Shown piece after piece: positions 39,107 through 56,771 of a DNA stretch of 64,000 nucleotides. The stretch comes from Thecamonas trahens ATCC 50062 (taxonomy: Eukaryota > Protista > Apusomonadida). Numbering within the stretch: the first letter of the stretch is position 1; each line of letters begins with the position of its first letter. The notes under the pieces were generated by a model that was not told the origin of the DNA, ran no database searches, and saw nothing but the letters and a program-made list of their open reading frames with translations. Position numbers and translations under genes: made by a program. The stretch spans positions 248,001 to 312,000 of the forward strand of contig NW_013657658.1 of NCBI RefSeq assembly GCF_000142905.1. Direction: 5' to 3'.

Positions 39107-41209
39107 TCACGACGAGACGATCAGCGAGGGATACAACGAGGCCGGCCAGGCGTCGCTCGAGCTGGAGCCCGATGCGGGCGACCCGCCACCGCCTGACGAG
39201 CTGCTCTTGTCCGACGCTGGCGACATGGCCTGCGCCTTCAGAAAGTGCTGCCGCTCGCGCTGAAGCTCGTCCTGCGTCCGCGCCAGTGGCGGATCGTCGT
39301 GCGCGAGGTAGAAGACTCGCGACGGCGAGAGCGTGATCGAGGCGTCGAGAACCTGCGGCGGGTCAACAAGTGAGAGCGGCATCGGCGGCGAGCTCCACAT
39401 TGGCTTGCGCCGCTTACGGGTCCGCGAGCCCGACGGCGAGTAGCTCGGCGAAAACCGCGTCGGCGAGCCGTGGTCCGGCGACCGCTGGCGGCGCTTGCGC
39501 GACGATGTCGATCGCTCCTTCATGGCAGCGATGGACGAGAGCTGCTGCGAGGTCGTCAGCGTACCCGGAAGCGTTTCATAGACCGGTGCCAGAATAGCAG
39601 CCTTGGTCGAGACCGTCGGCATCTGCCGCTCCTTGCTCCGGCGGATCGAGATGCGCCGCGACGGCGTCGGCTCGCACGAGACTGAGCCTTCTGTCGAAGG
39701 TGTCGACGGCGGAAGGAGCATCCGGGATGACGGCGGCGAAACAGAGCTCGCTGCCGACGACGAGCGCGACGAGGCGCGCTCCATGACCGAAAACGCGCCA
39801 CCGCTCGATTCCAGTGACGGTGACGCGAGCGCCATGCGCTTTGAAGGCGATGGCACCGACGCGAGCGATGTCGGGGCACTCGACGCCGCCGCTGCCGCCG
39901 CGCGGGTCACCCGCGCCGCTGCACGCGGCCGCCGCGCGCTCGGCCGCAGCCCGCGGAGCATCAGCGGCGGGCTGTCAAACTGCGACGGCGAGAACGGGAC
40001 GCCGTCGTCGGGCTCGGCAAGCGCAGGCGCCGGCGACGACGACGGATTGATAGGGATCGGCGCAATCGGCGTCTGGGTGGCAGACCGCAGCGCCACCCGT
40101 CCCAGTGGTGGCGAGCCCATGGTGGTCGAAAAGAGCGATGGCGGTGGCGACAGCAGCATGTTCGCCCGCCCGGCACGCCGCGGGTCCGACCCGCTCGGCC
40201 CAGCCCGCGACGCTCCCGAGCTTCTTGAAGACGACACCGGCATCGGCGCGCTTGTACCCACCACCCGCGACGCCGAAGGTCGCGAACCGGTCCGGTACAC
40301 CGGACCCGACGGCGGCGAGAAGAGCTCTGTCCGCAGCGGGCGCTTGCTCTCTGCAGCAGCCGGCGCCAGCGGGCTGTCGAGCCGCGCTGCGCTGCTCATC
40401 TTGTACACCCGATGCGCCTGCGCAAGCGTCATCGTCGACGCCGCAAGCTTGGCCGTCATCGGCTCGCTCATCTCGCCTGACGGAATGTGGCCTTTGATGG
40501 GCGAGAAGAGGTCAAACAGATTGAGGTCGTCCGAAATAAGTGACGACGCAGACTCCTCGCCTTCGTCCTTGTCACCGGCCGCCGGCGACGCCGACCGCTC
40601 CTTGCCGCTGGCCTTGGCCTCGCGCGCAAGCTCGGCCGCCACCCGCGTTGTCGTTGCCGGTCCGGCGGCGGCGCCGGGCACAGTCGGCGCTGTCACCGCC
40701 GGCGGCGATGCCGACTTTGATTGCGACGCAGACTTGGCCGCCTTGCGCGACGCTTTGGCCTTGCTTCGGCTGGCCGAGCTCTTCTTCCGCGCCGCCGCAG
40801 CCTTGGACGCTCCCGACGCCGACGTCGACGGGCCCGAGGCCCCGCCCTGAATCTTGCGCTTGAGCGACGAGTTCCAGTGGTTCTTAATGGCGTTGTCCGT
40901 CCGCCCGGGCAGGAGCTTGGCAATCTCCGCCCACCGGTTGCCCATCCGCGAGTGGGCCGAGAGAATGACCGTGTCCTCGATGACCGTCCACGGGCCCTTG
41001 TAGATCGCCGGGTTGATATGGTTGTGCCACCGCTCACGGCACTGCTTCCCGATCCGTCCGGGCAGGTGCTCAGCAATCATGGTCCACTTCACGGGACCAT
41101 GCTTCTCCACTAGCAGCCGCACCAGCTCGTCCTCCTGCGGCGTCCACGCGCCTTTCAGCACCTCCTTCCGCCCCTTCTTCTTCTTCTTCACCTGCGTCGT
41201 TGTCGTCAT
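39107..41209 (-). CDS. MYB: c-Myb/B-Myb-type R2R3 transcription factor with a long Ser/Pro-rich tail
   Basis: [57 protein letters not shown]; many SP/TP sites. Confidence 0.92.
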
Positions 41210-41282: not shown

Positions 41283-41328
41283 TTTTTGCGCCATTTTTGG
41301 TCGACTCGGCCAAAATTCAAAATTTTCG
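41283..41328 (-). promoter_or_regulatory. Candidate CHR (TTTGAA) plus E2F-like element 5' of the Myb ATG
   Basis: CGAAAATTTTGAATTT at 41328-41313; TTTTGCGCC at 41284-41292; TTTGGCGC at 41559-41566. Confidence 0.55.
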
Positions 41329-42602
41329 TTCGGCGCTCTCCACATCCCGCGCGCGCGGCTCACCCGCACCACACCTTCCGGCCTCGCACACTGCGTGTAT
41401 GCCAGCTTCTTCATCGTCCTCTACACACAGCACCATGTGCCACTACCTTCTCTACTACAGGCTGCGACTTGCTGCTCTCGCGAAGCTCTTGGTCGCTCCA
41501 TACGAGCTCGATGGTGATGGGCATAGTGTGGCGTGGGAGTGGTCATTGGGCCACAAAGTTTGGCGCACTGCCTGACGCGGGGAGGGGGAGGTGGGCGACG
41601 GCGCCAAGGCAAGCCACAAGGAAAAGGTGGGGGGGGGTGTAATGGCAAGGGGGGGAGACAATGGGCATTGTGTAGACCAAGATGAAGTTATTCGTACCTG
41701 TGGTGGCGGTGTTGGACGTGATGTAGTGTGTTGCAGAACAAGATCACAAACCAAGTAGACTCTCTTGTGTCCCTTCGCCTGGTGTCGAACTTGGCGCCCT
41801 TCCGCCGTGCCAAGGTGAAGTCTTGCTCAATTTGTCCATTACTCGTTCATTCGTTCATTCGTCACCACCTCCCCCCCCTCCCCCTCCCGTGCTCTTTTTC
41901 GTGTTCAATGTTTTTGACATCATTTAATCGTTGGAGCTCGGCTGAGGCTACCGTCAGTGGCCCGGCCCGCCTGCCTCGCTGGCCATCGCATCAACTATGC
42001 GCGTTGAAGCAGACGACTGTCACCAAAGCTTCTCAATCTTTGTTATTTGTTGTATCTCTGCACAATACACTCACTGCAGGATCTCTATTCCTTTCCCCCT
42101 CCCGCCCAGTCCTGCTTACTGCAATCTGCTTGCTGACATGGAATTGGAATAGCCTTGGAAGGTTGGATTTGGTCGGTCGACCGCATCAACTTGACGGATT
42201 CGCCGCGCCTGCCCCGCGAGAGCAGCTCCTCATTCACATGCTCTGCCATGGGGATGATGAACAAGTAGAACTGAGAGAATGTGTGACTGATACAGATTAC
42301 GACATGTTGCACCTTCTCCATGGGTTGTACATCATGCATTGGGGGCTGCTGGCAAGAGGTCAATGTGCCGCCCATATCAGCCAAGCTTGTTGGGGAGAGG
42401 CGGCAGCAGCAGGTTGGCTGGCGAGGCGAGGCCGTGGCCTGAGTCTGGAGGGGAAGGTGGGGGGGGGTAACAAGTGTCTCACTCGAGGAGTGCAGCAGAC
42501 GAGACTGAGGGGTCAAGAGAGCGCACAACAAGACGGGGAACAAGTGTAACCTCTCTTCTACACATAGACATACTTGTTGTCTCTATACCTCTGTGCATGC
42601 TC

Positions 42603-53130: not shown

Positions 53131-55591
53131 TCATGCAGCAGTCTGCTTGGAGGAGGCCTTAGAGGCGATCTTGGAGAGGATCTGGCGGCAGTACGTCAGC
53201 CTGTTCACCAGGTCCGGCGACTGCTCGACCATGACAGCCTGAAGGGTGTGGGTCGAGGTGTTGCGCTGCTTGTCGACGTAAGTCACGATCTGGGCCTCGG
53301 ACGAGAGGATGATCTTGGTGTGGTCAAAGAAGTTGACCTGGACGGTCTTGTCGGAGAGGCGGAAGATGATGGCGTGCTTGGTGCGGAGCCACTTTTTGAC
53401 ATAGACCATGCCGGCGGTGGGCGCGTCCTTGGCATCGGGCACGTTCATGGCCGAGATGCCCGGCGATGAGGCGCGGGTGGAGGAAGAGGACTCGCCGTCC
53501 TTGTCTGCGCGCTCGAGGTGCTCCATCAGGTAGTTCTTAAAGTACGTGAGGAGCGTCATCTTCTTGTTGAGCGACTCAGGATACTCTTCCATGGTCACAG
53601 ACTGGGCGAGGTCGCGCGAGCCGGCCGACGACCGCAGCCGCTCGACGTAGTCGACGTTGGTCCCGTTCGATGAGAGCACAATCTTGGTCGAGTCGTTAAA
53701 GTACACGCCGATGGTGCCGTCGGAGAGTTGGTAGCCGAGCCCGTACTTGTTCGAGTAGTCAACCCACTTGATGACCCACTTTGCCGGCTCGGACGGAATG
53801 GCACCGTCGGGTGCCGCTGCCGCCGCCGCCGCCTTGCCCGAGTTCATCAGGGCAAACGACTTGGTGAGCTTGTCGTGCATGGCGCGGAGCGCGGCCGAGT
53901 CGTCATCGTCGGCCTTGGTGGTGCCTGCGCTGCCAGACGATGGGCGCGCGTCGGCGGCATCAGTGGCGCTCGCCTTGGCCTTGGCCTTGGCCTTGGCCTT
54001 GGCCGCGTATCCACCCGAGCCCACGCCATACTTGGCCTTGAGCGCCTCAGTGTAGTTGGACGAGGCGGCAGCAGAGCGGGCGGAGGCGCGCTCGCCGAGC
54101 GGCGCGCGCGACGCGTACTTGGCGGCAATGGCCGCTGCCGACGACGAACCGCCGTCGGCGGCGTACTTGTTGGCCAGCGACAAGGTCGACGGCGCAGCGC
54201 CATCGGCGCTCGACCCAAACAGCTCCGAATGGAGCGGGGCGCGCTTGAGCGCCGTCGGCGGGAGTGAGGCTGGGATCGGATTGTCGGAGAAGAACCGATG
54301 GGCCTTGATCTCGGCAATGGTGGGGCGGGCCGACGGCCGCGCCTGCAGCATGGAGCGAATGAGCGACCGGGCCGCCTCTGAGATGGGCTTGTCCGGCGGG
54401 AACGAGTACGTGTTGGTCTTGATGAGGTTGTACGTCGTCTTGAGCTTGGACGTCTCGAAAGGCGGCTTGCCGATAATCATGGTGTAGAGAATGACGCCAA
54501 TCGACCAGATGTCGACCTCAAACGAGTGCCCGTTGTTGCGCGAGTCCAGAATCTCCGGTGCAATGTAGTTGGGCGTTCCGCAGATGGTCTTCTTGCGCTC
54601 GCCCTTGTGCTCGACCGAGGTGGCGAGGCCAAAGTCTCCGACCTTGACCTGGAGCTTGTCGTCGATGAACAGATTGCCGAGCTTGAGGTCGCGGTGGATG
54701 ATGTTGCGTGCATGCATGTACTCGGTAGCCTCGAGCAGCTGCCACATGTAGTACGCCACCTCGGGCTCGGTCAGCTGCCGCCGCGCCTTGAGCAGCTCCA
54801 TGAAAGAGCCGTTGGTGCAGATCTCGAGCAGGATATACACAAACTTGGAGTCCTCCATAAACTGAACAAAGCTCACAATGTTCTCGTGGTCCAGCGACCG
54901 GTGGAGCTTGATCTCAGACTTGAGCTTGGCACGCGCCCGTGCGCCGGTAATGGATGACTTGGCCACCACCTTGCCGGCGTACACCTTGCCTGTTGCCATG
55001 TCCTGAAACTTGTACACGCGCGCAAAGCCGCCCTACTCTCCCGCGCAGCCATCCAACCACACGTTGCAGTAGCTGTCGTCAGTTCTTTGTCTGCAAGCGC
55101 TCCTCTGCTCCCTCTGCCCCCTGCTTGCACCCGCACCAGCGCCTCCTTCCCGCCTTGCATCCCTATCTACCGCCTCGCTGCGATTTTGTTAAATTTTCAA
55201 AAATGCCGGCCGAAAGGCCATAAATTCAAAATTTTCGCCGCCGCGCGCAACGGCGGCTCACGACGTGGCGAGGCGCACAGGGGACAGGTATGGGGGCTAG
55301 CAAAGAGCTATGAGAGCTAGAACAAGCCCAATGGGTAGAGCATGCAGTGGAGAACGCAGATAAGTGGATGAAGATGGGAAAGAAGCTTACCTTGCCAAGA
55401 AGGGCGCCAGTCTTGTACTTGGCGCCCGTGGTGGCGTTTCGGACAATGTCCGGAGGCGGCTCCGAGGGCACCTTTGAGCGGGACTTGCGGGCCTTGGTAC
55501 GGGCAGCAGGGCGAGCAGCTGTAGCCGCTGCAGTGCGACGAGAGAGAGGGTTGTACACGCCCGCGGTTTGCGTGCGGATAGGGTACGACAT
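53131..55591 (-). CDS. PLK1: Polo-like kinase; exons 55591-55391 and 55032-53131
   Basis: LLGK|GGFARVY, HRDLKLGN, GDFGLA, GERKKTICGTPNYIAPE; polo boxes WVIKWVDYSNKYGLGYQL and QVNFFDHTKIIL. Intron GTAAGC..TAG. Confidence 0.96.
55190..55253 (-). promoter_or_regulatory. Candidate E2F/CDE + CHR module (two TTTGAA) with an adjacent Myb-type CAACGG, inside the PLK1 intron
   Basis: GGCGAAAATTTTGAATTT at 55239-55222; second TTTGAA at 55201-55196; CAACGG at 55248-55253 on the + strand. Confidence 0.6.
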
Positions 55592-56066
55592 GGTCGACAA
55601 CGGGGGCGAGACAAGTTGTCCTCTCCTCTCGCCTCCCCCTCACTGCCGCCCTCCCCACTGACTCGCTCCGTCCGTCGCTCTGGGCCAACGGCGCCCATCC
55701 GAACCGACTCGTTTCCATCGGCCTGTCACGGCGGACCCGAGCGGAGCTTCCCCCCCTCCCACCCCCTCCCACCCCCTCCCCCCAAGACCAACATGACCAT
55801 TGTCCATCAGTACAGCCAGGGATTTTGTCTGGGTAGATCAAAATGTCCAGTGCCCATGATCTTGAGCTCATCGGCTTGGTAGCTGCAATCAGTGTGTGTG
55901 TGTGTGTGGAGAGTGTGTGTGATGGGGCTGGCCGTGCTCGCTCGACTCGACTCTGTTGGGTGGTCGGCAAACGGTGGTGGGTATGCGCAGGTCGTTGTGC
56001 AGGGCGAGGTGCGAGGTGGGGTAAACATAGACACACTTGTCTTGTGGAGCAAGGGGGGAAACAAAG

Positions 56067-56771
56067 ATGTTGCGGTCAATGATGACGGCGATAGCGGCGG
56101 GAGCGAGCACGGGGAGTGGAGCGAGTAGCAGGTGGCTGGCTGGGCGGGGAAGAGCCGTTGGCCGGCGGACGGCGACGATGGTGCCATCGGTGGAGGAGAA
56201 GGATGGGAGAGTGTACGACATCTATTCTCGGCTGCTGAAGGAGCGGATTGTGATGGTGACGGGGCCAATCGAGGATACCATGGCTTCGACAGTTGTGGCA
56301 TCGCTGCTGTTTCTCGAGGCCGAGTCGACGACCGCGCCCATCTCGCTGTACATCAACTCGCCCGGCGGAGTCATCTCCTCCGGCTTGTCCATCCTCGATA
56401 CCATGGCCTACATCCAAGCTCCGGTCCACACTGTGTGCATGGGCCAAGCTGCGTCAATGGCATCGCTTCTGCTGGCAGGTGGAGAGTCTGGATCGCGGGC
56501 GGTCCTTCCCAACGCGCGGGTCATGATCCACCAGCCGCACGTGGCCGGCATCGGCGGGCAAGCGACCGACATTGCCATCCAGGCCCGCAACATTGTTGAC
56601 ATCCGCGCGCAGCTTGTCGACCTCTATGCAGAGTTTACTGGCCAGACGCCCGAGGTCCTTGCCTCGGAAATGGAGCGCGATCGCTACTTTACAGCTGTCG
56701 AGGCTGCAGCCTTTGGTCTGGCCGACACGGTCATTGCCCGCCGGAGCCCTGGGCCGCCAAAGTCGTCGTAG
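56067..56771 (+). CDS. CLPP: Mitochondrial ATP-dependent Clp protease proteolytic subunit
   Basis: Arg-rich presequence; YDIYSRLLKERI, YINSPGG, GQAASMASLLL, RVMIHQP, MERDRY. Confidence 0.95.
   Translation: MLRSMMTAIAAGASTGSGASSRWLAGRGRAVGRRTATMVPSVEEKDGRVYDIYSRLLKERIVMVTGPIEDTMASTVVASLLFLEAESTTAPISLYINSPGGVISSGLSILDTMAYIQAPVHTVCMGQAASMASLLLAGGESGSRAVLPNARVMIHQPHVAGIGGQATDIAIQARNIVDIRAQLVDLYAEFTGQTPEVLASEMERDRYFTAVEAAAFGLADTVIARRSPGPPKSS

Follow-up and report, generated by a model that had tools for sequence, protein, structure and literature searches.

The window (the entire 64-kb stretch of Thecamonas DNA that we analyzed) contains a gene for a Polo-like kinase and a gene for an R2R3 Myb protein, and these two genes share an identical 16-mer, AAATTCAAAATTTTCG. 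The features that matter for our argument are:

39107..41209, minus strand: R2R3 Myb gene, 700 amino acids, with two Myb repeats from residue 20
41313..41328, minus strand: CHR-like element 5' of the Myb gene; core 12-mer at 41315-41326, sense AAAATTTTGAAT
41559..41566, plus strand: E2F consensus TTTGGCGC, about 350 nt 5' of the Myb ATG
53131..55591, minus strand: Polo-like kinase gene; exon 1 at 55591-55391, intron at 55390-55033, exon 2 at 55032-53131
55196..55201, minus strand: second A/T-flanked TTTGAA core in Polo intron 1, sense context ATTTTTGAAAATTT
55222..55237, minus strand: CHR-like element in Polo kinase intron 1 (the same 16-mer); core at 55224-55235
55248..55253, plus strand: CAACGG, a Myb-site consensus, in the Polo intron, 13 nt from the core 12-mer (55235)
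55598..55691, plus strand: two more CAACGG just 5' of the Polo ATG (starts at 55598 and 55686)

An element shared by the Polo kinase and Myb genes

The exact copies of AAATTCAAAATTTTCG lie at 41313-41328 and at 55222-55237. Even with up to two mismatches, there is no third match within the window, and 100 shuffles of the window gave an expectation of 0.01. Because the Polo and Myb genes are both on the minus strand, both read CGAAAATTTTGAATTT in the sense orientation. An earlier note on this sequence had pointed out the identity of the two copies and their shared orientation, as well as a second TTTGAA, a CAACGG, and the GGCGAAAA context at the Polo copy, and all of these are present. The window has 12 TTTGAA hexamers, and only three of them have A/T-rich flanks (two in the Polo intron and one 5' of Myb).

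The core 5' of the Myb gene is 105 nt from the ATG (41209). In the Polo gene, the core is 155 nt 3' of the splice donor and 357 nt past the ATG. Exon 1 begins with the ATG at 55591 and ends at 55391 (...GALLGK), intron 1 is 358 nt long with GT..AG borders, and exon 2 opens with GGFARVYKF, which completes the glycine loop of the kinase. Since GGFARVYKF restores the glycine loop across the exon junction, the intron is genuine. The encoded protein combines a kinase domain with two POLO boxes. Upstream of the Polo ATG, a 1.2-kb stretch contains three CAACGG but lacks any TTYRAA or E2F site. The CHR-like copies at this gene are exclusively intronic, and the earlier view that the element lies in the intron rather than at the promoter holds.

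The same note had read GGCGAAAA, which overlaps the element, as an E2F site (consensus TTTSSCGC). This was not borne out: the SS core is missing from GCGAAAA, and different sites have different bases 5' of the AAAA. The AAAA of GGCGAAAA is the A-tract of an extended CHR element, as described below.

Copy number and shape of the core motif

In the genome assembly (28.7 Mb, ~63% GC), the exact 16-mer occurs three times, and there are three more copies with one mismatch. The third exact copy is on contig C88, which is a duplicate of the Polo locus (99.74% identical). The part that is common to the aligned copies of the 16-mer is a core 12-mer, AAAAKTTTGAAT in sense. The genome has 22 copies of this core and 0 of the reversed word, which we used as a control; the estimated expectation from base composition alone is ~0.4 (assuming independent bases at 63% GC).

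Dispersed repeats are recognized by shared flanks, many copies, and terminal repeats. Identical flanks were found solely at the duplicate contig. The flanks of the other copies are unrelated, with no similarity past about 25 nt, and the motif is therefore a short functional word rather than a family of repeats. The earlier note had raised the concern that the motif might be common or part of a dispersed repeat, and 22 copies in 28.7 Mb with unrelated flanks answer it. We also considered whether an A/T-rich word had simply recurred by chance, or whether a mobile element had left the 16-mer behind. An estimate with independent bases does predict a few chance repeats of 16-mers per 64-kb window, and two of the exact 12-mers (one in an A/T-rich island and one in the coding region of a WD40 protein) do resemble chance matches. 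However, this explanation is inconsistent with the shuffles, with the lack of any genome match to the reversed word, with the dissimilar flanks, and with the non-random gene neighborhood (see below). On the strength of the unrelated flanks, the 22 versus 0 comparison, and the shuffle expectation, we excluded a dispersed repeat, a mobile element, and chance, and we view this origin as the most improbable of the explanations that we weighed. From the 22 copies we removed three (the C88 duplicate, the copy in the WD40 coding region, and the copy in the A/T-rich island of 200 nt), which leaves the 19 sites that we used.

The consensus of the element is roughly S-AAAA-K-TTTGAA-T, usually with TTTG(G/S) 0-8 nt downstream. 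TTTGAA is present in 22/22 exact sites. If one mismatch is allowed, there are 107 matches genome-wide, compared to 23 for the control, and about 26 of the 107 are an unrelated subtelomeric repeat, AAAATGTTGAAT. In the non-repeat sites with one mismatch, the mismatch is at position 1 in 11 cases, at position 12 in 16 cases, and at each position of TTTGAA in 0-4 cases. Nevertheless, the final T is preferred: AAAAKTTTGAAV occurs 16 times versus 12 for its control, while the form with the T occurs 22 times versus 0. The bases before AAAA-K show a weak preference for C/G, and the variant of the core with G (AAAAGTTTGAAT) accounts for 11/19 sites. TTTG is found within 12 nt downstream in 13/19 sites, and the bipartite pattern TTTGAAT-N0-8-TTTG occurs 60 times in the genome versus 7 times for the control. 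Among the 19 sites, there is no GC-rich box at a fixed distance 5' of the core. In particular, the GC-rich CDE that would be expected 4 nt 5' of the CHR is absent: AAAA-K occupies the four or five bases before TTTGAA.

In 11 clear cases, the element is 14-190 nt 5' of the ATG (these are distances to ATG positions, not to transcription starts). At one kinesin gene, it is instead 114 nt past the ATG, in a stretch that is either an intron or five consecutive codons ending in A/T. The element lies in the transcribed region (the first intron) in Polo, and probably does so in this kinesin as well.

In yeast, the RRPE (AAAATTTT-type) is an element of ribosome-biogenesis genes, and the T-variant of the Thecamonas core contains GAAAATTTT. 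So we also considered a yeast-type RRPE reading of AAAATTTT. We rejected it: the G-variant lacks GAAAATTTT, and the neighboring genes are mitotic rather than ribosome-biogenesis genes. The Thecamonas element is best read as an extended, bipartite version of the animal CHR, without the CDE.

Genes that adjoin the element

To call the neighbors of the 19 exact sites, we took stop-free open reading frames with high third-position GC and then used Pfam and the best PDB match, without phylogeny. Across the genome, about twenty cell-division genes have the motif next to them, and such genes adjoin at least 10 of the 19 sites (the cytokinesis-type formin is a looser call). The genes at exact sites are:

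Polo kinase, site in intron 1
Myb, site 5' of the ATG
kinesin-5 (PDB match KIF11, 1e-121)
kinesin-4 (KIF4, 8e-118)
kinesin-14-type (motor at the C-terminus, neck of the kinesin-14 type)
divergent kinesin (best match KIF15)
topoisomerase II (TOP2)
condensin subunit CAP-H
Aurora kinase (1e-125), with DKEN near the N-terminus
formin, Diaphanous-type
CAP-Gly protein
coiled-coil protein, weakly CENP-F-like
two other long coiled-coil ORFs

Since the genome has ~50 kinesin genes, chance would hardly place four kinesins among the 19 sites. Long coiled-coil ORFs without a Pfam assignment adjoin two of the exact sites (L017 and L029). A kinase beside site L013 has no PDB match better than 1e-75, and we left it unclassified. 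At 5 of the 19 sites (L020, L023, L030, L035, and L036), the neighbors have no assigned identity; the L035 site is within or beside a TPR-repeat ORF.

We also ran the test in reverse, by comparing the coordinates of matches to mitotic and G1/S gene families with the coordinates of the motif. With ~80 sites in 28.7 Mb, we estimate that a gene would have a site within 1.5 kb by chance with a probability of ~0.004. UBE2C (5e-65 to human UBE2C) has a one-mismatch site about 65 nt 5' of its ATG, the best CDC20 gene has one 390 nt 5' of the WD40 domain, and an A/B-type cyclin (the second-best match) has one 770 nt 5' of the cyclin box, in sense. NDC80 and BUB1 are divergent neighbors with one common one-mismatch site between them, and the gene for an ASPM-type ASH-domain protein adjoins another. 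Altogether, 8 of the ~50 kinesins have a site. As a G1/S control, we checked the MCM genes, and 0/7 have a site. Several canonical mitotic genes also lack the strict site: four SMC genes, the MAD2-type HORMA gene, INCENP, NUF2, and CAP-G, as well as the cyclin match with the best score (on C16) and the second CDC20/FZR gene. A gene for PRC1/MAP65 was not found in our search of the genome. The earlier note had predicted enrichment at mitotic genes, and the enrichment that we see is strong, with exact sites at Polo, Myb, four kinesins, TOP2, CAP-H, and Aurora, and with one-mismatch sites at UBE2C, the ASPM-type gene, cyclin, CDC20, and NDC80/BUB1.

Could the element instead be an A/T element of general use, either in core promoters or in DNA structure (to mark starts or to exclude nucleosomes), that is found at arbitrary genes and has no role in the cell cycle? 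Its position 14-190 nt from the ATG in most of the clear cases, its A/T-rich composition in a genome with 63% GC, and the five sites whose neighbors lack an assigned identity would fit. However, there are about 20-80 sites for what we estimate to be on the order of 10,000 genes, the neighbors are overwhelmingly mitotic while the 7 MCM genes lack the element, and the Polo copy is in an intron, 357 nt past the ATG. We consider this explanation to be very unlikely. The element is real and specific, and, judging from the identity of the adjoining genes and their co-occurrence with it, it marks a cell-division regulon.

Partner motifs, the predicted reader, and the age of the code

Around each of the 19 sites, we counted potential partner motifs out to 100 nt. 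YAACGG, the core of Myb sites, occurs at 2.6/kb, compared to a background of 0.65/kb; it is found at 7/19 sites, including the Polo intron, and there is none within 100 nt of the element at the Myb gene. The strict E2F motif TTTSGCGC occurs at 1.3/kb, compared to a background of 0.05-0.19/kb, and is found at five sites (including TOP2, Aurora, and CAP-H), where it is 1-36 nt 3' of the core. The sites with YAACGG and the sites with the strict E2F motif do not overlap. Three of the genes (Aurora, kinesin-5, and kinesin-4) have an E2F-like GCGCGCC directly next to the ATG, at 14-15 nt from the core. Neither element in the window has a strict E2F site within 100 nt; the E2F site nearest to the Myb element is TTTGGCGC at 41559, which is 233 nt further 5'.

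Thecamonas also encodes the proteins that would be expected to act at such sites. A single CXC gene, on C27, matches the DNA-binding domain of human LIN54 (5FD3, 7.6e-29). This LIN54 homolog lies beside an assembly gap and has three CXC modules, and it retains LKLYCDCF and LKRYCDCY, which align with the human motifs and are the contexts of two tyrosines that contact DNA in the minor groove. Whether a LIN54/CXC protein is encoded had been named in the earlier note as decisive for its idea; the homolog is there, with both tyrosine contexts kept. The other proteins that it listed (LIN9, E2F/DP, and Rb) were all found, plus Myb: there is one LIN9/DIRP gene, one gene for an RB pocket protein (RB_A), and three E2F_TDP genes (E2F/DP), one of which is a two-domain E2F7/8-type gene. 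An apparent fusion of a kinesin and an E2F on C18 is two separate genes. In 3-kb pieces around the LIN54, LIN9, and E2F loci, we found no A/T-flanked TTTGAA.

We propose that the motif is a CHR-type element of a mitosis and cytokinesis regulon, with the LIN54 homolog as its predicted reader and with Myb and E2F as partners; we put the probability of this at roughly 70%. The rarity of the motif, the gene neighborhood, the partner motifs, and the encoded proteins all support the idea of a regulon with a shared CHR cis-module. We infer both LIN54 binding and G2/M timing from gene identity and co-occurrence. Under our proposal, the LIN54 homolog, as the DNA-binding subunit of the MuvB core, would bind the TTTGAA core. 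Together with the RB-like protein and E2F/DP, LIN54/MuvB would form a DREAM-type repressor outside of G2/M; partnership with Myb would instead yield Myb-MuvB, an activating complex, in G2/M. A nearby YAACGG (Myb) or TTTSGCGC (E2F) would help to recruit one partner or the other. The element would act in either orientation and, in the Polo kinase gene and probably in one kinesin gene, from the first intron.

In humans, the late cell-cycle genes with conserved CHRs that were tabulated by Mueller et al. (2014) include PLK1, MYBL2, KIF11, KIF4A, KIF15, and TOP2A (PMC4176359). NCAPH, AURKA/B, UBE2C, ASPM, CDC20, CCNA2/B1/B2, BUB1, NDC80, and CENPF are in the same table, and inverse CHRs are functional in human (PMC4176359). 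The Thecamonas element is found at nearly the same set of orthologous genes (with orthology assigned by best match). It is also like the animal CHR in its invariant TTTGAA, in its probably promoter-proximal position, in occurring in both orientations, and in having Myb and E2F sites nearby, and Thecamonas, too, encodes LIN54, LIN9, RB, E2F/DP, and Myb.

There are differences as well. The Thecamonas consensus is longer than the animal CHR, with a 5' AAAA-K and a 3' T that are required, and the element lies in a first intron in at least one case. Unlike the animal CDE/CHR, it has no CDE 4 nt upstream, and has an E2F-like TTTG(G/S) 0-8 nt downstream instead. Animal LIN54 has two CXC modules, whereas the Thecamonas homolog has three. 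The Myb in the window is R2R3 only, and a comparison of its C-terminus with the PDB gave no match that would point to a MuvB-binding region.

Some of these differences bear on another explanation, namely that the mitotic regulon is real but is read by some other, perhaps lineage-specific, protein (such as an HMG-box or forkhead protein), and that the likeness to the CHR arose by convergence or coincidence. At twice the length of the LIN54 hexamer, the conserved word needs the A-tract and the final T, which are outside of the animal consensus; furthermore, the CDE is missing and the E2F-like element is on the opposite side. But an invariant part that is exactly TTTGAA and that mismatches avoid, and a gene set that matches the human CHR table nearly one to one, speak against a different reader. 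So do the co-occurrence of Myb and E2F sites, which are sites for known partners of MuvB, and the retention of the DNA-contacting contexts of LIN54 in the sole CXC protein. We think that another reader is unlikely, and we prefer the LIN54 homolog.

A 2019 review describes the MuvB targets of humans, flies, and worms as enriched for the CHR (TTYRAA), which by then had not been identified in plants (PMC6927116). CHR-like motifs are found at the MuvB targets of the DREAM complexes of C. elegans and Drosophila (DRM and dREAM; PMC4176359, PMC6927116). The Thecamonas element is similarly a CHR-like sequence outside of the vertebrates, but Thecamonas is an apusomonad and so lies outside of Opisthokonta. 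In plants, which have DREAM-type complexes (MYB3R at the MSA, and TCX5/6), motifs for CXC proteins, E2F, and MYB3R are jointly enriched at cell-cycle promoters, and YAACGG, which accompanies the Thecamonas element, is a point of likeness (PMC6927116; PMC13674485). In particular, a 2026 paper reported CXC, E2F, and MYB3R motifs at the Arabidopsis promoters that are bound by TCX5 (PMC13674485). However, the MSA is the main G2/M element of plants, while in Thecamonas the most specific signal is TTTGAA, and Myb sites are found at about a third of the sites.

Our search of the literature found no cis-regulatory analysis for Thecamonas or for the cell-cycle genes of Capsaspora. For phylogenetic footprinting, we scanned metagenomes with the kinesin-4 protein, and no close relative was found (the best match was 56% identical). 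The 12-mer was present near KIF4 homologs at 0/80 metagenome loci (~480 kb of contigs, with no close relatives among them). These loci serve as an additional negative control for the motif and are uninformative about its conservation.

The CHR code, with which animals switch on mitosis genes, probably predates both animals and fungi. More specifically, we give about even odds to a LIN54-CHR mitotic code in the common ancestor of apusomonads and opisthokonts, and maybe in the first eukaryotes, with a 12-bp CHR plus TTTG, a LIN54 with three CXC modules, and an ability to work from introns as its Thecamonas form. The TCX motifs of plants are the reason that the code may reach back to the first eukaryotes. 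If our proposal is correct, then the CHR/LIN54 code originated before animals and fungi, and the long and specific Thecamonas motif would be a useful probe for LIN54 binding. The Polo gene indicates that a first intron can harbor such an element. A nearly complete G2/M regulon, including unknown coiled-coil proteins, would be readable from the genome sequence alone, and this would provide a ready-made set of candidate mitotic genes for a protist that has been little studied, including the unannotated coiled-coil proteins at exact sites.

Repeats, duplicates and a probable compositional match

The Polo-like kinase locus of the window has a second copy elsewhere in the Thecamonas trahens assembly:
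C88:6279-9294 (L003), Polo-locus copy
Window 53722-56737 (L002), its counterpart
The two are 99.74% identical across 2328 nt and divergent beyond. The C88 copy is a haplotig or assembly redundancy.

One exact 12-mer lies within an A/T-rich island whose surroundings are GC-rich:
C13:262990-263180 (L021:1430-1620), low-GC island, ~200 nt, GC ~25%
This match is probably the product of base composition alone.

At least 14 contigs also carry the word AAAATGTTGAAT near an end, at a distance of 370-1200 nt (for instance, at C1:916, C2:914, C10:740, C16:436, C20:374, C24:443, C27:559, C28:664, C30:495, C37:480, and C52:448), with identical orientation at every contig end where it is present. It looks like a subtelomeric repeat with no relation to the mitotic element.

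The CXC and atypical E2F genes

C27:228454-229226 (L049-L051), CXC (LIN54/TCX) gene
C18:121837-124361 (L054), C-terminal-motor kinesin and atypical E2F

The sole CXC gene in the genome encodes three CXC modules, not two, and is interrupted by a run of N directly after the third. On C18, the kinesin is followed ~700 nt on by an E2F with two DNA-binding domains (the E2F7/8/DEL type). We considered a kinesin-E2F fusion and rejected it: these are two separate genes.

Element sites at candidate and known mitotic genes

One divergent kinesin carries the element 114 nt 3' of its ATG:
C36:67444-67817 (L031:1387-1760), divergent kinesin with element
The element is in frame and contributes five successive A/T-ending codons to a gene whose GC3 is ~76%; between the element and the FEFD motif comes a low-complexity insert of ~75 aa. 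The explanation is either an intron not yet recognised or a DNA motif retained within the coding sequence.

Long coiled-coil ORFs lie beside three other exact sites:
L046:5171-8941 (C26), 1257 aa, starts just downstream of the site
L045:5196-7043 (C2), 616 aa, starts just downstream of the site
L040:3-4745 (C15), 1581 aa, only its end is near (~250 nt from) the site
No Pfam family was found for any of the three. The 1257-aa and 616-aa ORFs are candidates for unannotated mitotic proteins.

Finally, two mitotic genes are divergent neighbours, ~1 kb apart:
C5:367384-369220, NDC80 on the minus strand, BUB1 on the plus strand
A single AAAAGTTTGAAC site is located between them, and this interval is probably a mitotic promoter common to both genes.
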